A DNA stretch of 64,000 bases from Rebecca billardiae RCC1528 (lineage: Eukaryota > Protista > Haptophyta): assembly GCA_965240325.2 (NCBI GenBank), contig OZ251222.1, positions 4,340,001 through 4,404,000 of the forward strand, read 5' to 3'. This document shows, in pieces, positions 6,019 to 35,737 of this stretch. The stretch's first letter is position 1; every line of letters starts with the position of its first letter. Made by a program: the position numbers and the translations under genes. Under the pieces are notes generated by a model. That model made no database searches. It saw only the letters and a list, made by a program, of their open reading frames with translations, and had not been told where the DNA came from.

Positions 6019-9000
6019 ATGTCCGCCCTCCCGCCGCCGAGCTCGCCGCGCTCGCCACGCTCGCCGCGCGGGCGCGCGTCGAGCGTGTTCCACCGCGTGG
6101 AGGTGTTCGTGCGCGTGCGCCCGCTCCTGCCGCGCGAGCGCGCGGCGGCCGAGGCGGAGGTGGTGCTCGCGGACGAGCGCGTGGGCAGCGTGACGGTGCT
6201 GCCCGCCTCGCCGTCCGCGCCCGACGCGAAGACGCTGAGCTTCGACGGCGTGCTCGGCCCCGACGCGTCGCAGCGCGCGACGTACGACGCGGTGGGCGAG
6301 CCACTACTCGCGCGCGCGCTGCGCGGGTACAACGCCACGCTCCTCGCGTACGGCCAGACCGGCTCGGGCAAGACGCACACGCTTCTCACGCACGGCTCCG
6401 CGGCGCACGGCGAGCGGCACGCGCCCGCGTCGGCGACGGGCATCCTGCCGCGGCTGGTCAGCGCGCTGTTCGGCGCAGTGCGCGACGACATCGCGCACGT
6501 GTACGTCGTGCGCGCCTCCTTCGTGCAGGTGTACAACGAGAGCGTCTTCGATCTGCTGGCGGGGGCGCGCGGGGCGGGGGCGGAGGCGGAGGCGGAGGCG
6601 GAGGCGGAGGCTGAGGCGGACGGCGGCGCCGAGGTGGCGCACCGCGCGCCCTCGCCGCGCGCGGGCTCGGACGTGGGCTCGCCCGTGCGGCTGCGCCTCG
6701 GCGCGCTCGGCGGCTCCGCGCTCGAGGGCGCCACCTCGCTCGTCGAGGCGAGTAGCGCGCCCCAGCTCCTAGCCCTGCTCGCTCGCGCGCGCGCCAGGCT
6801 GGTGTTCGCAGAGACGCGGCTCAACCGGCACTCGTCGCGCTCGCACGCCGTGGTGCAGCTGCACATCACGCGGCGCGAGCGCGCCACCGCCGCCGACGCC
6901 GACGCCGACGCCGACCCACCCGGCGGCAGCGTCGGCCGCACCGGCGTCCACCCCTTCCGCGCGCGCGCGCTCACGTCCAAGCTCACACTGGTCGACCTGG
7001 CGGGCAGCGAGCGGGTGGCGCGCACCGGCTCGCTCGACGACTGGCACTCGTCCGCGCCCGGCGCGGGCGGGCGCTTCCGCGAGGCCGTGGCCATCAACTC
7101 GTCCCTCCTCGGCCTGGGCATCGTGATGCGAGCGCTCGCCGATGCGCAGAGGGCGGCGCGCGCCGCGCCGCCGTCCCCGCGCCACGGCGGCGGCGGCGCG
7201 GACGGCGGCGGCGGGCGCGGCGGCGGCGGCGGCGGCGGCGGCGCGTACGTGCCGTACCGCGACTCGAAGCTGACCGCCATCCTGCACGACGCGATCGGCG
7301 GCAACTGCCTCACCCGCCTCGTCGTCTGCGTCTCCCCCGCCGGCTCTGACGCTCCGGAGACGCTCGCGTCCCTGCGCTGGGGCGGGCGCGCGATGGAGGT
7401 GGGCACCGACGCGTCCGTGAACGCGTCGACGGTGCTGGTGAGCGCGCAGCGGGCGGCCGCGGACCTCGCCGAGGCGCTGGAGCTCGAGGCGGAGCGCGAG
7501 CGCCGCGCGCGCTGGGGCGACGCCGACGACGACGACGAGGAGGAGGACGGCGGCGGCGGCGCGCGCGCGCGCGACGCCGCGCGCGCGGACGGCGGCGCGC
7601 GCTCGCGCGACGCGGCCGCAGCCGAAATCGCGGCCGAAGTCGCGATCGACGCGGCGCGCGTCGCGTCGGGCGCGGCGCGCGAGCGCGCGAGCGCGCTCGA
7701 GCGCTCCGCCGTCGTCGCCGCCGCCGAGCTCCAGGCCGCGACCGACGCGCTCGGCCGCGCGCGCGCGCTTGCCGATGAGAGCGGTGCGCGCGCGGACGCG
7801 GCCGTTGGCGCGGCCGCGCGCGCGGCCGCCGAGCGCGACGCGGCGCGCGCCGACGCGGCGGCGGCGGCGGCGGCGGCGCGCGAGGCGGAGGGCGCGCTGC
7901 GCGCGGAGCGCGAGGCGCACGCGCGCACCGCCGCCGCGCTCGACGCCGCGCGCGCCGACGCGGCCGCCGAGCGCGCGCGCGCAGACGCGGCGAGTGCCGC
8001 CGCCGACGCGGCCGGCGCGCGCGCGGCCGCGGCCGAGTCGGGCGTGCCCGCGGCGGTGCAGGAGGTGGCGGCGGCGCTGAGCAGGCGGATCGCCGCGTCC
8101 GAGCGCGCGCACGCGGCCGCGCTCGAGGCGGCGCGCGCCGACGCCGCCGCGACGGCGCGCGCCCACGCGGACGCCGACGCCGCCGCGGCGGCGGACGCGG
8201 CGCGCGCGGCCGAGCGCGCGCGCGCCGACGCCGAGCGCGGCGCGGCCGTGCGCGCCGCGCGCGCGGAGGGGGTCAGGGAGGGCGCGGAGGCGGCGCGAGC
8301 GGAGGCGGCGAGCGCGCTGGCGGAAGCGCGTGAGGCGCACGCGGCCGCGCTGCGCGCCGCCCAGGCCGAGGCGGCCGCGCTGCGCGAGCGCGCCGCCGCG
8401 CCGCCGCCGCTGCCACCCGCGCCGCCGCCGCCGCCGCCTCGCGCGGAGGCGGAGGCGGAGGCGCAGGCGCAGGCGCAGGCGGGCGCTCGGCTGCGCGCTG
8501 AGCTCGCGCAGGCGCGGCGGGAGCGGTCGGAGCTGCAGGCGGCCCAGGCGCAGGAGCGAGAGCGCGCACGCGCCGCCCTCGAGGAGGCACGCGCCGCGCG
8601 CGCGGACGCGGACGCGGCGCGCGCGGACGCGGACGCCGCGCGCGCGGACGCGGACGCGGCGGCCGCGGCCGCGGTGGCGCGCGCGCGCGCGGCGGAGGCG
8701 GAGGCGGCCGCGGCGCACGCGGCCGCGCACGCCGCGGCGCCGGCCGCGGTGGCGGCCGCGCGCGCCGACGCAACCGCCGCGCAGGCCACCGCCTCCGCGC
8801 GCGCCGCCGCCGCCGAGCTCGCCGCCGCGTCCGCGCGCGCGGGCGCGCTCGAGGCGGCGGCGGCGCGACTGCCGCCGAGCGCGCGCGCCGCCTTCGCCGC
8901 CGACGCGGCCGCCGAGAGTGCTGCCGCCGAGCTGCGCGCGGCGCGCGCGGGCGCGGGGGCAGAGGGCGGCGCGGAGGGCGGCGCGCTCTCGGAGGCGCGC

Positions 9001-9736
9001 GCGCACGAGCTGTCGCTCGAGCTGGTCCGCGCGCTCCGCCGCGCCGGCCGCGCAGGCGAGGCGGAGGCGGAGGCGCGCGCGCTGGCGGCGGCGAGCGCGC
9101 GCGCCGCCGCGCCCGCGGCCGGCGCGGCCGACGCCGACGACGCCACCGCCGCGCGCGTGCTCGCCGCCGAGCTTGCGCTGGGCGAGGTGCTCGCGGAGCG
9201 CGCGGCCGCGGGCGGCTCGGATCCGTCGGCGGCGGCGGCGGCGGCGGCCGAGGCCGAGGTGGTCTACCGCCGCGCGCTCGCGCGGATCGAGCGCGGCGGC
9301 GGCGGCGGCGGCCGCGGCCGCGGCCGCGGCCGCGGCGGCGGCGGCGGCGGCCACGGCGGCGCGGGGGCAGGGGCGGCGCGCGCCGAGGCGGCGCGCGCGC
9401 TCAGCGGCCTCGCGACGGCGCTGAGCGCGCAGGGGCGGCACGCGGAGGCGGAAGCGCTCGCGAGGCGCGCGCTCGCCGCGCCCGTCGGCGGCGCCGCGCC
9501 CGCGCCCGCTCCTGAGGCCGAGCGCGCCCTGGCGCGCGCGCTGCGTGGCCGCGGCCGCGCGGCGGACGCGGCCGCGGCCGCGCGGCGCGCGCACGCGGCG
9601 CTGAGCGCTGCGCACGGCGCGGAGGACGAGCGCACGCTGCGCGCTGGCGCGGAGCTGGCCGAGGCGCTACTCGCCGCCGCCGCGCCCGCCACCAGCGCCG
9701 CCGCCGCTGCGGGCGGCGGCGGCGGCAGCCCCGGGC

Positions 9737-9777
<41 letters not shown>

Positions 9778-10876
9778 CGCAGCCGCGAGCCGGCCGCGGC
9801 CGCGGCCGTGGCTGCCGCGGCGGCGGCGGCTGCGGAGGCGGAGGCGGTGCTCCGCGCGCTGATCGACGCGCACGTGCGCGCGCACGGCGCCGAGCACGCC
9901 GAGACGCTGCGCCTGCGCACGCGGCTCAGCGAGCTCCTCGTGCGCCGCGCGGACGACTCCGCCCGAGCCGCCGAGGCCGCGGTCGGCGCAGCGCGCGCCT
10001 CGCGCGCGGCGCACGAGAGATCGCGCGGCGCCGACGACGCGGCCACACTGGGCAGCGGCGCGCTGCTCGGCGAGGCGCTGGCGCGCGCGGGGCGGTGGGA
10101 GGAGGCGGAGGCGGAGCTCGCGCGCGCGCACGCCGGCCTCGGCGCCGCGCTCGGCGCCGAGCACGCGCGCACCCTCGCCGTCGGCGTCCGCCTTGCCGAC
10201 GCGCGCGGCCGCGCTGGGCGCTGGGCGGAGGCAGAGCGCTTGTATGCCGCGGCGGCGGCGGCGGCGGCGGGCGCGGGCGCGGGCGCGGAGGGCGGCGCGG
10301 AGGGCGCGCTGGGTGCGCGCGCGGCGGCGGGGCGCGCGCGCGCGCTCGAGGCGCTCGGGCGCGAGGCCGACGCGCTGCCGCTCCTCCGCGCCGCCCTCGC
10401 CGCCGCCGAGCGCTCGCACGGCCAGGACAGTGCGCGCGCCGCGGACGCGGCCGCGCGGCTTGCGGCGGCAGCGCACGGCGCGGGCCGCGCGCGCGAGGCG
10501 GAGGCGGCGTGGCGGCGCGCGCTCGGTGTGCTCGAGCGCGCGCACGGCCGCGCGGCGCCGCCCACGCTGCGCGCGCTCCGCGGCCTCGCCGCCGCGCTCT
10601 CTGCGCAGGGCCGCGCCGCCGACGCGGCCGCGCTGTGCGAGCGCGCCCTCGCGGCGCGCGACGCGTCGGCCGCGGCCGGCGGCGGCGGAGGCGGCGGCGG
10701 AGGCGGAGGCGGCGCGGCGGCGGGCGGCGGCGCGGGCGAGGCGGCGGCGCAGGAGCTGGCGCACGAGCTGGCGCACGCGCTCACGCTGCAGGGCAAGGCG
10801 CAGGAGGCGGAGGCGCTGCTGCGCACCTCGCTCGGCGCGCTCGACGCCGCCGCCGCCGCCGAGCCCGCCGCCGCCG

Positions 10877-10909
<33 letters not shown>

Positions 10910-11742
10910 CCGCGCCGCTGCGCGTGCGCGCGCGCGCGCTGCTCGCCGCCGCCCTGGCGGCGCAGGGGCGGCATGCGGAGGCGGAGGCGGCGGCCGAGCA
11001 GGCGTGCGCGGAGGGTGGCGGCGCGCTCGCCGAGCCGAGCGCTGCCGCGCGCGAGGCGGCGCGCACGCTCGCGCGCGTGCAGCACAGCGCGCGAGAGGCG
11101 GCCGCGCGGCGCGACGCCGCGGCGGAGTCGCTGCCGCGCGCAACAGCCGCGGCCGACGCGGCCGCGGCCGAGGCGGCGGGCGCGCGGCGCGCGGCGGCTC
11201 GGCTCGCGGCGGAGGTCGAGCTGTGCGCGCGCGAGCTCGGCGAGGCCGACGCACGCCGCGCCGCCGACGCCACCGCCGCCGCCGCCTCGGCCGCGCGGCT
11301 GCGCGCGCTGCTCGGTGGCGCTGTGCTGCGGCTGCCGCCCGCGCGGCCGCAGCCGCACGGCGCGGGTGGCGCGCCCGCCGGCGGTGGCGGCGGCGGCGTG
11401 GCGCTTGCGGGCGTGCACCTCCTCCGCGCGCTCGGGCTTGGTGCGGGCCCGGCGGACGCGCGCTCGGCGCTCGGCCCGGCGCAGCTGCGCGGGCTCGAGC
11501 GCGCGGTGCGCCGCGGCGCCTCCGCAGCGCGCGCGCACGCGTCCGTGAGCGCGCTGCGGCAGCAGCTGCACGCGCTGGCGTACGATGTACACAGGCACGC
11601 GCTGGGCGGCGCGCTGTGGCGGGACGAGCTGCTCACCACGTTCGCCCGCGCGACGGCGGCGACGCACGTCAAGCCGATGCGGCCGGCACTTGCTGCGGGA
11701 GGGGCGCCGGGCGTCGAGACGCGCGCGCAGTCGAGGTCGTAG
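6019..11742 (+). CDS. Kinesin motor protein with an Ala-rich coiled coil and C-terminal TPR (kinesin light chain-like) repeats
   Basis: VFVRVRP, P-loop AYGQTGSGKT, QVYNESVFDLL, switch I NRHSSRSH, switch II LVDLAGSER and [23 protein letters not shown]. Downstream are repeats of the type AQGRHAEAEALARRAL, HGAEHAETL and LGAEHARTL. Confidence 0.9.
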
Positions 11743-12431
11743 TGTCACAGCGGACGATGGATACGCGCTGCCACTCTGTCAACTGCAGTGCCGGCCAGCC
11801 GGCGCAGCCCCAGCCAGCGGCGCTGCACTCTGCAGCCCGGCTCATGGCTCTTCTAGAGTGCGTACTGACTGGCTAGCCAAGCTCTGCGCGGCTGAGGCAC
11901 GCATCGACCGCGAGCAGCATGACGGCCCGACTCTCCGCGCGGCGGACGGAGTGGCACGGCCACACGGCCCTGCTCAGTACTCGCTGCTCCCGCCACCTGT
12001 TCACATCCCGACGATTTGAGCCGCGCGACGTTCCGCCTAGCCGAGCGGAGACTCCTTGGCAAGCGACGGCCCGTCCGGCGGTCGGACCGCGGGCTGGTTG
12101 GCGCGGGTCCCAGCGCAGGACGCGAGTTCGTCCTGACCGCGTCGTCATGAGTGCGGACGCCAACGATGACGGCCGACACTGATGGTGGCGGCTCTCTGGG
12201 TCGGTGCCGTCAGACGGAGTCGCCGATGTTCGACGACTGTGCCGTGGGCTGTGGGTGTGGGACCTTTCACCGCGGAGTGGGCGTTGGGGGCGGCTCGGCT
12301 CGTCTTATGTCGTGCATGCGCGGCTGCTTTGGACCGCCATCGCTTTCCCCTTTTCCGGCGGACGTCTTTGTCGCGCACCTTCGCGCCCGGGCTGCATGCC
12401 TGCATTCAGTCATTCACGCTGCACCGCACAC

Positions 12432-28912: not shown

Positions 28913-29704
28913 TCAGCGCGTCCACTGCGCGGCGCCTATCTCCGGGAGCACACGCACCTCCACGTCCCCGTACACCTGCGTGATGCACGCGAGGCGGTAC
29001 GAGCCGGGGTTCTCGCGCAGCGTGCTCGCCTCGTCGAGCGACTTGCGCGAGCACCGCTCGCCCCCGTCGCGCACGTCGACGATGCACGTCCCGCACAGCT
29101 GCTTGCCGTTACAGTTGGTCCAGCGCGTGAGCGAGCGGTACACGTTCACCTTGCGCTCGGTCAGCTCGTCGCGCAGGTTGCAGCCGGTGGGCGCGGTGAA
29201 GGCGAGGTCGGGCTGGCCGTCGCGCACGACGCGGATGCTCACCGTCGGTGGCAGCCCCTCGTACCCCACGGACTGCTGCAGCTCCTCGCGCCCGCCCCGG
29301 AACAGGGTGAGCCGCATGCTCTCGCCCTCGGCCTTGGACATCACTTCGGTCACCGCAGACATCTCCGCGCCGACGAGGTTGGTCGAGCCCACGCCGAGCA
29401 GCTGGTCGCCGATGGCGATCTCGCCGCACAGCTCCGCCGCGCCGCCGGGCACCAGCGCCAGCACGTACGGCCAGCATAGGCTGAGGTCGCATCCAAAGTC
29501 GATGCCGGTGCGTCGGTCGATGGTGACCGAGTAGATGCGGTCGTCCTTGGCGACAGGCCGGCCGCGGCCCTGGAGCGCGCGCCGTTCCAGGCGCGATGAG
29601 CCGGGCATGCGCGCCCGCGAGCTCGTCCAGGCGCCCACCGCGGGGAGGATCAGCGCAATCGCTGCGGCGAATGTCGCGGCGCGGGCGCGCGTTGAGGCAG
29701 CCAT
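28913..29704 (-). CDS. PDZ domain plus 2Fe-2S ferredoxin protein, probable bipartite plastid-targeting sequence
   Basis: Signal-like FAAAIALILPAVGA-W; PDZ-like TGIDFG..GGAAELCGEIAIGDQLLGV..LTLFR; ferredoxin NCNGKQLCGTCIV...YRLAC. Confidence 0.85.
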   Translation of the reverse strand: MAASTRARAATFAAAIALILPAVGAWTSSRARMPGSSRLERRALQGRGRPVAKDDRIYSVTIDRRTGIDFGCDLSLCWPYVLALVPGGAAELCGEIAIGDQLLGVGSTNLVGAEMSAVTEVMSKAEGESMRLTLFRGGREELQQSVGYEGLPPTVSIRVVRDGQPDLAFTAPTGCNLRDELTERKVNVYRSLTRWTNCNGKQLCGTCIVDVRDGGERCSRKSLDEASTLRENPGSYRLACITQVYGDVEVRVLPEIGAAQWTR

Positions 29705-29874: not shown

Positions 29875-30980
29875 ATGGCGTCGGCTCTCACCCCGCTGAT
29901 GAAGGCGCGCGTCGACCTCGCGGCAGTGTACCGGCTGCTTGACAAGATGCACCTCAACGAGGGCATCTGCAACCACCTCACGGCGATGGTGCCGGGCACG
30001 ACCGACCAGTTCCTCGTGATCCGGTATGGGCTGCTCTGGTCGGAGGTGACGGCGAGCAACCTCGTGCTGATCAACGCGGCCGGGAAGATCATCGAGGGCG
30101 AGGGCCCGGTCGAGACGACCGCCTTCGAGATCCACAAGGCCATCCACCTCGCCGACCCGGCCAAGTACCAGTGCGTGCTGCACACGCACATGCCGTACCT
30201 CTCGACGCTCTGCTGCATCGAGCCGATGGAGCTCAAGGCGCGCGCGCGCGCACGGCCGCCGCCGCGGGGGCGCGCGGGTGGGGATGCGTTCGGCATGGCG
30301 CCTCGTCCGCCCACCCGCCGCCCCGCCCTCCGTGCCTCCCTCCCCGCCCCGCGCAGATGGTGCACCAGAACTCGTGCAGGTTCTACGAGAACGTCGCGTA
30401 CGACCCGCAGTTCAACGGGCTGGTGCTCGACGACAAGGAGGGCGAGCGCCTGGCCAAGGTGCCGCGCGTGCGCGCCACGCTGGCCGCCCGCGCCGCGCGC
30501 GCCGGCGTGACCGCGCTCCCGCCCCACGCGCCGCCCCCCGCGCGCGCCCCCAGATGATGGGCGGCAAGACTGTGCTGATGCACCGCTCGCACGGCGTGAT
30601 CGTGTGCGGCGCGACCGTCGCCGCGGCGTTCGACGACCTCTACTACCTCGAGCGCGCGGCGCAGCTGCAGGTGATGGCGCTGAGCACGGGTGCGCAGATC
30701 TCGCTCGTCGACCCCGAGACGGTGCGCGCGCTTATGCGCCCCCAGCGCGACGCGGCGCACGGCCATGGACGCGCGCGCCCCTTGATTGACGCGCGCTCCG
30801 TCCTCGCGCCCGCCCCCGCCGCAGTCCAAGCACGTCAAGGAGCAGATGGACGCCGGCAAGCTGGAATGGGCCGAGCAGCACCTCGAGGCACTCAAGCGCC
30901 AGTTGGGTCGGGAAGACCCGGAGTGGCCTGGGCTCAACGGCTGCGGCGCTGAGAACGGCGGCAAGCGCGCACGCAAGTAG
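29875..30980 (+). CDS. Class II aldolase/adducin family protein (candidate DsyD-like DMSHB decarboxylase); 4 exons
   Basis: DLAAVYRL..LNEGICNHLTAMVPG, FEIHKAIH, CVLHTHMPY and HRSHGVIVCG..AAAFDDLYYLERA. Introns are 30238-30356 (GC-AG), 30459-30553 and 30722-30824. The family call is firm; the substrate is inferred. Confidence 0.88.
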
Positions 30981-32547: not shown

Positions 32548-33447
32548 TTAGAAGACCGGGCCTTCCTTGCGGCAGCCGAAGATGCCCCATGCGAACACCG
32601 CCTTGTCGTTTTGGATGTCGACGCGCTGGGTGAGCGAGTCCATCCATTTGTCGAGGTACTCGTTTGTCACGCCCTCCGAGATCATCGCTGCGCGGTGCGT
32701 GTTGATCTGGTCCACCATCGACTGGAAGTAGTGCTTGAGGTGGTCGGAGAAGTCGAGGAAGCTCACGTCGCGGTACCCGGCGTCGACGAGCAGCTGGCGG
32801 TACTCCGACGGCCGCGCCATCTTGGTGGTGGCGTTGCGGTCTGTGAAGTCCTTGAGCGCCTTCTCGTCGGCGCCGTCCGCGCCCATGATGTCGGTGAAGA
32901 CGAACGCACCGCCCGGCTTGAGCACGCGCTTGAGGTCCTTGAGCAGCGCCGGCTTGGACGCGGCGTGGCACAGCACCTCGCACGAGATCACGTGTGTGAA
33001 CTTCTCCGACCAGTCCGCGGGCAGGCCGTCGTTGAAGTTGCCGAGGATCACCTCGTTCTTGTCGCCGACGCCGCGCGCTTTTGCCTCGTCCTGGTTCATC
33101 TTGTTCTGCTCGGGCGAGATGTTCATGCCAATCACCTTGCAGCCAAAGCGCTCGATCAGCTCGTGCGAGATGCCGCCGTGGCCAGAGCCAAGATCGAGGA
33201 CGAGCGAGTCGGCGGTGACGGGCCGCATCCAGTCCAGCGAGGTGAGCAGGCGCGCGTTCGTCTCCTTCGACGACTCGTACACGCCGTCCGACGCCTTGCG
33301 GAACACGCCGTAGTGAATGTCCATCCCACCGCCGCCCATCACGTACTTATAGAACGTGCGCGCGTGCGCGAGGTCGTACTGCTCGACCACCTTGTCGGCG
33401 ACCTCGGTCTCGGCGAACTGCTTATCTTTGAAGTCTCCAGTCGACAT
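32548..33447 (-). CDS. SAM-dependent methyltransferase, sarcosine/dimethylglycine-MT-like fold (candidate DSYE/DsyG-type MTHB S-methyltransferase)
   Basis: Intronless, 299 aa from ATG 33447. Motifs: FYKYVMGGGGMDIHYG, motif I VLDLGSGHGG, GMNISPEQN, SCEVLCH, KRVLKPGGAFVFTD and C-terminal AWGIF. Confidence 0.9.
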   Translation of the reverse strand: MSTGDFKDKQFAETEVADKVVEQYDLAHARTFYKYVMGGGGMDIHYGVFRKASDGVYESSKETNARLLTSLDWMRPVTADSLVLDLGSGHGGISHELIERFGCKVIGMNISPEQNKMNQDEAKARGVGDKNEVILGNFNDGLPADWSEKFTHVISCEVLCHAASKPALLKDLKRVLKPGGAFVFTDIMGADGADEKALKDFTDRNATTKMARPSEYRQLLVDAGYRDVSFLDFSDHLKHYFQSMVDQINTHRAAMISEGVTNEYLDKWMDSLTQRVDIQNDKAVFAWGIFGCRKEGPVF

Positions 33448-34621
33448 GGCTGTGCGTGTGTGAAGGCGCGAGGCGACGACTCGGGGTGCGCGACAACGGG
33501 AGAGCAGCGCGCGGACGGTCGAACACGTGGTTGACACGATGAGAATCAGCGTCTAGCGCCAACAAGCGTCGGCCACGGATCTCTTTGCGAGCTCCCCAAA
33601 TGAGGGTCCGGAGACCGAGCGTGAGTCCGGGAGCGCTCTTGGCATCCACGCTCGAGATTCAATCTCGCAACGGGTGGGTCACCCAGCGAGTCCCGACGCA
33701 CCCAGCCTGGTCCGGCGTGGGGGCGATAATCAGAGTGCGAGGGATCACAGCGAGCCCAGCTTCGCCCTCTTGCTCATCCGCCCAGCGCTTTCCAGCGGTG
33801 TGCGGCGCTATCGCCTCCTCCGCGGCCGCCGCCGAATCAAAGCCAAGGTCTGCTTGACTTCCCTCGGCCTCAAGATGGTCCGGGAAGCTTTATGAGGAGC
33901 TTCGGAAGATTTTCCCGGACAAAATTCTGCACATACGGTAGAAGTTTCAGATTTGTGCCGCTCGGCTGATGAAATCTCGTACCCCCATACAACTCACAGA
34001 TGACTGTAGTTATTTTTTCTGATGAGCGTCGTACCCGTCTCATGTCTGCTGCATCATACCATCTCTCACAGAGGCTTCAGTCAGAGTGGCGGGTGGGGCC
34101 GAAAAGGCACAAATGCAACGTATTCGGGGTGGGCTAACGAGGTGATTGTAGGTGATTACCGCGGGTGGAGTCAGATGTAGCTAGCTATCAGGAGGTGTGA
34201 TGCTTCTTATGCTTCTTACCCGCCGGCCGTTCATGGATAATTGGTTAAAAGCGGGCGCCAAACCAGATTCAGAAGGAGATTCGCCCTGATTCAGGGATCT
34301 CAGGGCCTTCTCCCGGCTTCGGACATCGTTACGACCCGGGTCGCAGGTAGGCGGGGCCCGGCGCACCACCTGCCGCACGGCGTCAAGATCCTGGGCCGCA
34401 TCTTTTCGGTGACGCGGAGTGACGCGGCCCAGCGTCCGCTGCGCCTCGTCGATTCGGAGCGCCACAGAACTCCTCGCGAACGGGTCAACCTCGAAGCGGG
34501 TGGCGACGACCTCGCCGCTCTAGATCCACTCGCAGAGCGCGCTCCTCCCGCCCACACAGGGCTCCGCCGACACGGCGAATTCGGGCGAAACTAGCACCCG
34601 CCTCACCACCAGGCCGCTGAG

Positions 34622-35737
34622 ATGCCTGTCCTGTCCCCTCGCCACCCGTCCTTCCTTGTCGTCGGCTCGGGCTGCGTCGGCTCGTACCTTGCGACGACCC
34701 TCGGCAAAAACGGCGCGTCGGTAACGCTGAAGGCGCGCGGCCCGCCGAAGACGCCCATCGCGAAGCTCGCAGCGAAGGCCGGCGTCGAGGTCGTCACCGA
34801 CCTCGCCCCGCTCGCACGAGCCATCGGCGCGGGCGATCGGCCGCCGCTCGACGCCATCTTTGTCGCCACAAAAACATACAGCTTCGAGGATGTCGCGAAC
34901 CAGCTGGTCGAGGCGGGGCCGTCGCTGCGGCCGCAGCTCGCCACCGTCGGCTGCTACAACGGCCACGTGCTCGGCGCCAAGGACCTCTTTGGCCAAATTG
35001 GCGCGGGCAGCTCCGCGGGCCCGTCGGTGTTCTGCAAGGCGCTCGTCCCGGGCGGCTACTCGATCAAGGAGGACGGCTCGGGGTTCAACGTGACGAACGC
35101 GGGCCAGAAGTGGTCCCTCCTCTCGACCACGCCCGAGGTGCGTCAGCTCGCCAAGCACATGGCCTCGTACGGCGTCGCCACCGTCGCCGGCGGCTTTGAG
35201 GCGGACACGCGCAAGTACCTCGTGAACAACACCGCAAACCTGGTCTCCGTGATCGCAAACACCAACTGTAACGGGCTGATCAACGACCCGGCGCTGCTCG
35301 CGCGGATGCGCTCCATCTTCCGCGAAACAGCGGAGGTGCTGCGAGCCGCGCCCGCGCACCGCGAGCACTTCCCCTCCGCCATCTCGCTCGACGAGCTCGA
35401 GGAGCAGGTGTTGAGCGGCATTGCGTCCTACGCCGAGCACTACCCGTCGTCGTGCAAGGACTTCCGCGCGGGCCAGCCGATCGAGGTGAGCTCGCTGAAC
35501 GGGTACATCTGCGCGCTGGGCGAGCAGCTGGGCATGGACACGCCGGTCAACAAGGCCGTCGTCGACGACGTCTCCATCGTCCTCCGCCAGCACCAGCAGC
35601 AAAATGCGGACGCCGAGGAGGCGGAGCGCGCGCCAACTGCGCCAAAACCGCAGCTGCCCGAGGCGCGCATCCGGCGCGGGCTCGGCGCGCGCATCGTGCC
35701 CGAGCAGCCGGCGTCAATGACGGTAACTCGGCGCTGA
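34622..35737 (+). CDS. Ketopantoate reductase (ApbA/PanE) family 2-oxoacid reductase (candidate MTOB reductase)
   Basis: Rossmann motif LVVGSGCVGSYLA, IFVATKTYS, YNG, RKYLVNNTAN (catalytic Lys region) and PSSCKDFRAGQPIEVSSLNGYI (ApbA_C signature). Confidence 0.85.
   Translation: MPVLSPRHPSFLVVGSGCVGSYLATTLGKNGASVTLKARGPPKTPIAKLAAKAGVEVVTDLAPLARAIGAGDRPPLDAIFVATKTYSFEDVANQLVEAGPSLRPQLATVGCYNGHVLGAKDLFGQIGAGSSAGPSVFCKALVPGGYSIKEDGSGFNVTNAGQKWSLLSTTPEVRQLAKHMASYGVATVAGGFEADTRKYLVNNTANLVSVIANTNCNGLINDPALLARMRSIFRETAEVLRAAPAHREHFPSAISLDELEEQVLSGIASYAEHYPSSCKDFRAGQPIEVSSLNGYICALGEQLGMDTPVNKAVVDDVSIVLRQHQQQNADAEEAERAPTAPKPQLPEARIRRGLGARIVPEQPASMTVTRR

Follow-up and report, generated by a model that had tools for sequence, protein, structure and literature searches.

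A ketopantoate reductase-like protein encoded head-to-head with DSYE as a candidate for the reductase step of algal dimethylsulfoniopropionate synthesis

Which protein reduces 4-methylthio-2-oxobutyrate (MTOB) when algae make dimethylsulfoniopropionate (DMSP)? The question is raised by a gene for a divergent ApbA/PanE-fold oxidoreductase, which lies next to the gene for the methyltransferase DSYE in a stretch of 64,000 nucleotides from the haptophyte Rebecca billardiae RCC1528 (contig OZ251222.1, positions 4,340,001 to 4,404,000; this whole stretch is referred to as the window). DMSP, of which petagram amounts are produced, is the chief precursor of climate-active dimethylsulfide. The algal route has been established by labelling and leads from methionine via MTOB, 4-methylthio-2-hydroxybutyrate (MTHB) and 4-dimethylsulfonio-2-hydroxybutyrate (DMSHB) to DMSP (PMC11306096; PMC5395565). 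In algae, a gene is known solely for the methyltransferase step (DSYB, DSYE, TpMMT), while transamination, reduction and decarboxylation lack an assigned gene. For the transamination pathway, a review of 2026 mentions no enzymes other than those of the methyltransferase step and DsyGD. The literature that we searched contained no paper that assigns a gene to the algal MTOB reductase, in agreement with what an earlier note on this DNA had supposed, and none that ties ketopantoate reductase-like or aldolase-like proteins to DMSP synthesis. The same note had proposed that the enzyme reduces MTOB to D-MTHB. Our computational analysis supports this proposal through gene fusions, a conserved gene pair and clear differences from canonical PanE. 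No better candidate for the reductase step is available than the ApbA-like gene, and we consider it rather probable that it encodes a dedicated MTOB reductase making D-MTHB for DSYE.

The ApbA-like gene and its neighbour DSYE

The two genes and the region between them are located as follows (window coordinates):

34622..35737, forward strand: ApbA/PanE-fold oxidoreductase gene, single exon, 371 residues; candidate NADPH-dependent MTOB reductase
33448..34621, no strand: region between DSYE and the ApbA-like gene, presumed bidirectional promoter, proposed from gene orientation
32548..33447, reverse strand: DSYE (clade D), MTHB S-methyltransferase of DMSP synthesis, 299 residues, assigned by identity and tree

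The ApbA-like gene is real and conserved, since its open reading frame (ORF) runs in one frame through all 371 residues without interruption, both Pfam domains of the family are recognized (ApbA, PF02558, residues 12-114, E=7.6e-9; ApbA_C, PF08546, residues 197-315, 78 bits), a near-copy of 371 residues is encoded on an independent public contig (369/371 identical, 99%) and orthologues with 56-68% identity are present in Diacronema lutheri, Pavlovales sp. CCMP2436 and MMETSP transcriptomes. These closest proteins mark the source of the window as a pavlovophyte. The window DNA is eukaryotic and very GC-rich, with a mean G+C of 71%.

The window DSYE is 80% identical to the protein from Exanthemachrysis gayraliae MMETSP1464, the transcriptome source of an assayed clade-D DSYE, and 72% identical to that from Nitzschia inconspicua. 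Methylation of MTHB has been demonstrated for DSYE from both E. gayraliae (clade D) and N. inconspicua (clade E) (PMC11306096). In a tree, the window protein is placed among the clade-D sequences of pavlovophytes. Its frame continues without a stop for 30 codons ahead of the conserved MSTGDFK start, up to position 33537 (33448-33537, reverse strand), and the E. gayraliae transcript likewise has an open upstream extension; this additional stretch could represent an alternative start or a targeting peptide.

That the ApbA-like gene is divergent from the methyltransferase gene, as stated in the earlier note, holds: DSYE on the reverse strand and the ApbA-like gene on the forward strand stand head-to-head with 1,174 bp between them. 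The same arrangement is found in three pavlovophyte genomes, i.e. in the window, in D. lutheri, where the gap shrinks to 185 bp, and on the 6.4-kb pavlovophyte-like contig L019 with a gap of 300 bp (contig and protein labels are our own). The proteins P0007 and P0022, encoded on contigs of equal length (6,848 bp), probably represent another such pair. A shared promoter in this region may co-regulate both genes.

Separation from canonical ketopantoate reductase

Synteny inside one algal class may be inherited and is therefore weak evidence by itself. Among related pavlovophytes it would, taken alone, also suit a housekeeping ketopantoate reductase (KPR) of pantothenate and coenzyme A synthesis whose adjacency to DSYE is without functional meaning. 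Such an enzyme is suggested by membership in the PanE/ApbA family with all catalytic residues in place, by the model TIGR00745 as the best NCBIfam match and by the public names of the orthologues, which read 2-dehydropantoate 2-reductase. However, the match to TIGR00745 (100.4 bits) does not reach the cut-off of 141.35, and the protein falls far under the cut-off of every NCBIfam KPR equivalog model. In a maximum-likelihood tree, the protein and its closest relatives form a group apart (SH-aLRT 96) from the 47 further ApbA proteins in it, E. coli PanE among them. A profile search of 1.84 billion representative proteins yielded just 18 clusters with E<1e-30, followed by matches at the generic ApbA level of 60-75 bits, a distribution far too narrow for a housekeeping algal enzyme. 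Judged by its sequence, the protein is a member of a small, separate ApbA subfamily and is not a canonical KPR, because it lies under the curated cut-offs, belongs to a separate clade and has replaced both ligands of the substrate's 4-hydroxyl group.

The last point rests on the following segments, all on the forward strand:

34664..34738: Rossmann motif GSGCVG (residues 15-20), then strand beta-2 with VTLKAR (Lys37, Arg39), placed by alignments
34949..34966: GCYNGH motif; Asn113 corresponds to E. coli Asn98 (2-oxo ligand) by alignment
35213..35269: KYLVNNTANLVSVIANTNC; Lys198 corresponds to the catalytic Lys176, Asn202 to Asn180 and Asn206 to Asn184; Cys216 replaces Asn194
35438..35485: HYPSSCKDFRAGQPIE; His273 replaces Asn241; Ser276 corresponds to Ser244, Asp280 to Asp248 and Glu288 to Glu256; Lys279 replaces Gln247

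The ApbA motifs named in the earlier note are thus present, GCYNGH as residues 110-115 and SSCKD within HYPSSCKD (35438-35461), residues 273-280. With E. coli PanE/ApbA (EC 1.1.1.169; 1KS9, 2OFP), the protein shares the Rossmann domain followed by the helical ApbA_C domain, the GxGxxG motif, an arginine at the position of Arg31 and the catalytic set. It differs from the E. coli enzyme in an identity of only ~19%, in its placement in a separate clade, in the exchanges of Asn194 for Cys and Asn241 for His, in the loss of Gln247 and in its genomic partners, which are DMSP genes instead of the pan genes associated with KPR.

In E. coli KPR, Asn98 and Lys176 hold the 2-oxo group, Asn184 and the backbone NH of Ser244 hold the carboxylate, the side chains of Asn194 and Asn241 bind the 4-hydroxyl of the substrate, and hydride delivery yields the 2R product (PMC10127515). 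The residues needed to reduce a 2-oxoacid are all retained in the window protein (Lys84, corresponding to E. coli Lys72, Asn113, Lys198, Asn202, Asn206, Ser276, Asp280 and Glu288). When 29 subfamily members were compared with 92 other ApbA proteins (E. coli PanE was taken from the MG1655 record), the equivalents of Lys72, Asn98, Lys176, Asn180, Asn184, Ser244, Asp248 and Glu256 proved invariant or nearly so in the subfamily, and Lys198, Asn113 and Glu288 do not vary at all. The column of Asn194 is occupied by Cys in 27 of the 29 members, a residue that is not among the six commonest at this position in the other 92 proteins, and the column of Asn241 by His throughout (29/29). Gln247, which is usually conserved in ApbA proteins, is lost, and Cys216, His273 and Pro275 make up a pocket signature that is strongly conserved in the subfamily. 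Both ligands of the ketopantoate 4-hydroxyl are thus replaced, by Cys216 and His273, which would be in keeping with a substrate that has a thioether tail and no hydroxyl group.

With regard to the cofactor, Arg39 aligns with Arg31 of E. coli PanE, which we take to be a contact to the 2'-phosphate of NADPH. Arginine is found in this column in 19 of the 29 subfamily members and in 78 of the 92 other proteins. The position of Arg39 therefore suggests use of NADPH, and the ApbA-like protein is probably an NADPH-type enzyme.

A structure predicted with AlphaFold from the subfamily alignment (mean per-residue confidence, pLDDT, 92.2) retrieved KPR or D-mandelate dehydrogenase structures exclusively among its top 50 Foldseek matches, with target-normalised TM-scores of 0.66-0.79 and both kinds intermixed. 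The best profile match of the subfamily in the PDB is D-mandelate dehydrogenase of Lactobacillus brevis, with 52 bits as compared to 26 for E. coli KPR. The ApbA-type D-2-hydroxyacid dehydrogenases, which comprise L. lactis 'PanE' and the D-mandelate dehydrogenases of Enterococcus and Lactobacillus (3WFI, 8WL1), have the same PanE fold, convert amino acid-derived 2-oxo acids into D-2-hydroxy acids and are NADH-dependent. The earlier note had pointed to such members of the PanE family, and they are indeed documented in the literature, having formerly been misannotated as PanE, that is as KPR. The L. lactis enzyme reportedly acts on MTOB. Our protein could accordingly be envisaged as a D-2-hydroxyacid dehydrogenase of broad specificity that serves 2-oxoacid detoxification or redox balance and accepts MTOB as one of many substrates, and the occurrence of subfamily members in giant viruses and in algae without known DSYE would be compatible with that. 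On the other hand, the pocket signature formed by Cys216, His273 and Pro275 is specific and strongly conserved, and fusion in one polypeptide with enzymes of neighbouring steps speaks for a dedicated role. Furthermore, the bacterial counterparts are NADH-dependent and catabolic, whereas the window protein is eukaryotic, probably of the NADPH type as suggested by Arg39, equipped with its own pocket signature and linked or fused to methyltransferases. A broad-specificity enzyme is decidedly unlikely in our view.

Fusions with pathway enzymes and the proposed reaction

The strongest pointers to a dedicated MTOB reductase lie outside the pavlovophytes, in proteins that join the ApbA-like domain to other enzymes:

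Pinguiococcus pyrenoidosus: fusion P0147/P0323, 695 residues, UniRef A0A7R9Y932
L005:10001-12082 and L006:1777-3858: fusion P0155/P0324, 693 residues, encoded without interruption on each of two marine metagenome contigs that are independent of each other (308 kb and 28 kb)
L007:8216-15471 and L008:3894-12976: fusion P0146/P0320, 601 residues, on contigs of 73% GC with overlapping genes in bacterial style
L015:5143-8677 (GCA_014466275.1): P0265, fusion of a branched-chain aminotransferase (BCAT)-type (class IV) aminotransferase with an ApbA-like domain, plus a methyltransferase gene

The first three represent 3 of the 18 subfamily clusters and are two-domain proteins encoded by single ORFs, with the methyltransferase at the N-terminus and the ApbA-like domain at the C-terminus. 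The methyltransferase domains share 35-44% of their residues with the window DSYE when aligned over the full length. They have the assayed DsyGD proteins of Gynuella and Oscillatoria sp. SIO1A7 among their nearest relatives and fall within the DsyG/DSYE family in a tree, where DsyG is their sister group and the UbiE-like outgroup is distant. The two eukaryotic fusions (P0323 and P0324) share 46% identity from end to end. A scan of bacterial genomes revealed no relative of the P0146-type fusion. The latter is flanked by genes for an AMP-dependent ligase and a large polyketide synthase (PKS), neighbours that suggest priming of the PKS with a hydroxy or sulfonium acid.

In P0265, the ApbA-like domain carries the subfamily signatures HNG and HYPST and is placed with the subfamily in the tree, on a long branch. 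Directly upstream and in divergent orientation lies an intron-split DsyG/DSYE-like methyltransferase gene, the pieces of which match DsyG/DSYE along their length with a summed score of ~150 bits and find no match in outgroup methyltransferases. At this locus, steps 1 and 2 of the pathway could be fused with step 3 adjacent. Taken together, the fusions and the P0265 locus put the ApbA-like enzyme after the transamination of an amino acid and before the methylation of MTHB, a position that corresponds to the conversion of MTOB to MTHB. Repeated fusion with DsyG-type methyltransferases and with an aminotransferase makes no sense for pantothenate synthesis, and in combination with the missed KPR cut-offs, the replaced 4-hydroxyl ligands and the separate clade this renders the housekeeping explanation very unlikely indeed.

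Adjacency to DsyG/DSYE and aminotransferase genes leaves the order of reduction and methylation unfixed. A reductase related to DMSP or other sulfonium compounds could therefore act on a different substrate, either on 4-dimethylsulfonio-2-oxobutyrate (DMSOB), which would be reduced to DMSHB, or on the precursor of a hydroxy acid destined for another product. DMSOB is shown as an intermediate in the scheme of a recent review, and the fusion embedded in the AMP-ligase/PKS operon would agree with another product. Against a changed step order stand the activity of clade-D DSYE orthologues on MTHB in assays (PMC11306096) and the sequence methionine, MTOB, MTHB, DMSHB of the algal pathway as established by labelling; the domain order of the fusions does not hint at any alternative route either. 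We regard a reductase of this other kind as unlikely.

The reading that we prefer is that of a cytosolic 2-oxoacid reductase with the PanE/ApbA fold that depends on NAD(P)H, probably on NADPH, and in which an ancestral ketopantoate-type chemistry would have been recruited to convert MTOB into D-(R)-4-methylthio-2-hydroxybutyrate. This would constitute step 2 of the transamination pathway to DMSP, the product feeding the DSYE encoded head-to-head. By homology, Lys198 would act as the general acid; the 2-oxo group would be bound by Asn113 and Lys198 and the carboxylate by Asn206 together with the main-chain NH of Ser276, and transfer of the nicotinamide hydride to the si face would give the 2R (D) alcohol. 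Cys216 and His273, standing in place of the Asn pair that binds the 4-hydroxyl, may accommodate the thioether tail. A D-specific product is to be expected because enzymes of the KPR type deliver 2R hydroxy acids. Summers and co-workers are said to have found that the algal reductase yields D-MTHB and that the methyltransferase is D-specific. A cofactor of the NADPH type would likewise fit, since the MTOB reductase step of an alga (Ulva) is described as NADPH-linked in PMC5395565 (citing Summers et al. 1998).

A precedent for a PanE-family member in a comparable setting is offered by fungal KivR from beauvericin and enniatin gene clusters, which prefers NADPH and is clustered with the consumer of its D-2-hydroxyacid, just as proposed here. 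KivR differs in its substrate (2-ketoisovalerate), in its partner, a non-ribosomal peptide synthetase, and in its lineage within the PanE family. For the MTOB reductase step itself, a bacterial candidate is on record. In Gynuella sunshinyii, a gene for a D-isomer-specific 2-hydroxyacid dehydrogenase (PF00389/PF02826; L012:9482-10450) overlaps the end of dsyGD. Wang et al. proposed this dehydrogenase as MTOB reductase, an activity that was not shown on testing (PMC11306096). In Gynuella, too, a 2-oxoacid reductase gene is therefore found beside a DsyG-type methyltransferase, but it belongs to an unrelated family, and the comparison with the algae would amount to non-homologous displacement at the proposed reductase step. 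DsyGD itself, a DsyG methyltransferase joined to the decarboxylase DsyD, is likewise an MTHB methyltransferase fused to the enzyme of an adjacent step. Whereas the ApbA fusions carry the partner for the preceding step, the reductase, DsyGD carries the PF04115 decarboxylase of the following step, and unlike DsyGD the methyltransferase and the reductase of the window are encoded by separate divergent genes.

With a specific candidate for the reductase that is easy to clone, the remainder of the pathway would become directly testable, all the more so as the natural fusion proteins constitute built-in coupled assays. If our assignment is true, it closes a gap that has stood for more than 25 years in a pathway of global importance, and a known enzyme family gains a new functional variant.

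Distribution, viral copies and the linked aldolase-like gene

A number of observations weigh against a dedicated MTOB reductase. The functional precedents, the L. lactis enzyme and the mandelate dehydrogenases, use NADH, and the window protein looks NADPH-type. The earlier note had read the altered motifs as a sign of a shifted substrate; this argument is only partly specific, since the His in the Asn241 column also occurs in 40 of the 92 other ApbA proteins, and the change peculiar to the subfamily is the Cys in the Asn194 column, which leaves Cys216 as the sole diagnostic residue. Identity between DSYE and the methyltransferase domains of the fusions is only ~42%, and some of the 'DsyG-like' proteins assayed by Wang et al. 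were inactive (PMC11306096). In Pavlovales sp. CCMP2436, the ApbA-like gene adjoins an aldolase-like gene and DSYE is located on a different contig; a tblastn search of the ApbA locus detected neither DSYE nor a remnant of it. Within 10 kb of DSYE in Pelagophyceae sp. CCMP2097 there is neither an ApbA-like nor an aldolase gene, and on a contig presumed to be Mamiellales-like the ApbA-like gene is accompanied by neither DSYE nor an aldolase gene. The absence of clustering at these pelagophyte and presumed Mamiellales-like loci means that the cluster is not general. None of the subfamily members found could be attributed to diatoms or pelagophytes, and carriers of DSYE in these groups may therefore use another reductase. 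Conversely, Pterosperma CCMP1384 and Synchroma own subfamily members, and both figure in the transcriptome listing of Wang et al. without DSYE, DSYB or TpMMT, with DMSP undetermined there (PMC11306096). Finally, two branches of the subfamily reside on giant-virus contigs with no DSYE nearby.

Co-occurrence with DSYE, which the earlier note had named as a check, is consequently seen in the pavlovophytes and is not universal, as the Pterosperma CCMP1384 and Synchroma members show. Contigs taken as Mamiellales-like also carry a subfamily member. Pinguiococcus, too, is listed without DSYE, DSYB or TpMMT in Table 3c of Wang et al. 2024 (PMC11306096); as it carries the DsyG-like::ApbA fusion, it may be an unrecognized producer of DMSP or DMSHB.

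The viral copies are found at two loci:

L017:2238-10936: viral ApbA-like gene, with genes for a major capsid protein of nucleocytoplasmic large DNA viruses and a poly(A) polymerase alongside
L016:3671-11044: viral ApbA-like gene in a region of 25% GC, with a capping enzyme/N7-methyltransferase and many ORFans

Both contigs were judged viral from neighbouring genes only. The viral branches are sister to the pavlovophyte clade, and the protein cluster from L016 is present on dozens of marine contigs. The flanks fetched for the two loci contained no DSYE and no aldolase gene, and a scan of IMG/VR with the viral ApbA-like protein gave no match.

In the pavlovophytes, a further gene accompanies the pair, and related genes were found elsewhere:

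29902..30926, window, forward strand: class II aldolase/adducin-like gene with ~4 exons (~29902-30237, 30354-30458, 30557-30754, 30834-30926), located by tblastn with the Diacronema and CCMP2436 orthologues and by Pfam Aldolase_II
L001:8038-8787, L002:12719-13468 (reverse strand) and L005:8611-9453 (reverse strand): further aldolase-like genes

According to tblastn, the window and D. lutheri have a common gene order, consisting of a PDZ/ferredoxin-like gene on the reverse strand, the aldolase/adducin-like gene on the forward strand, DSYE on the reverse strand and the ApbA-like gene on the forward strand. The aldolase gene is not present on the 6.4-kb contig L019. On marine metagenome contigs, an aldolase-II gene divergently adjoins the DsyG::ApbA fusion gene; it is just 30% identical to the pavlovophyte one, and a different NCBIfam model fits it best. 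The pavlovophyte gene belongs to the adducin-head branch of class II aldolases, its orthologues exceed the cut-off of NCBIfam PRK06486, the metal triad His-x-His...His is conserved, and the relatives in the PDB include 'Decarboxylase NovR' and TqaM. NovR/CloR and TqaM are non-haem-iron oxygenases that catalyse oxidative decarboxylation of 2-hydroxy or related acids. PMC5395565 describes the final step of DMSP synthesis, in which DMSHB becomes DMSP, as an oxidative decarboxylation, and the DMSHB decarboxylase of algae is still unidentified (PMC11306096). We put forward the hypothesis that the aldolase-like protein is a candidate DMSHB oxidative decarboxylase. MtnB of methionine salvage, a pathway that also produces MTOB, was considered for the aldolase-like gene and rejected, as TIGR03328 scores 20-31 bits compared to a cut-off of 137, and PRK06486 and PRK07044 fit.

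Together with the reductase, a linked decarboxylase candidate would supply marker genes by which DMSP producers could be predicted from ocean 'omics data, with Pinguiococcus as a case to which they would apply. More tentatively, the algal transamination pathway may be completely represented by a BCAT-type aminotransferase, the ApbA-like MTOB reductase, DsyG/DSYE and an aldolase-like DMSHB decarboxylase of the NovR/CloR/TqaM kind, which are fused or adjacent in pairs depending on the lineage, with copies of the reductase in giant viruses; we hold this wider scheme to be possible and somewhat doubtful. If true, the viral copies would imply viral manipulation of methionine and DMSP metabolism in the host.

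The tblastn searches, which covered the window as well as pavlovophyte and fusion loci, detected no aminotransferase gene, no second PanE gene and no gene of the 2-Hacid_dh type. The PDZ/2Fe-2S ferredoxin-like gene (window 28916-29632, reverse strand) is divergent from the aldolase-like gene, and these two are syntenic in Diacronema and CCMP2436. Elsewhere in the window, positions 8001-12000 stand out by a G+C of 0.83-0.88 across ~4 kb, compared to the window mean of 0.71.

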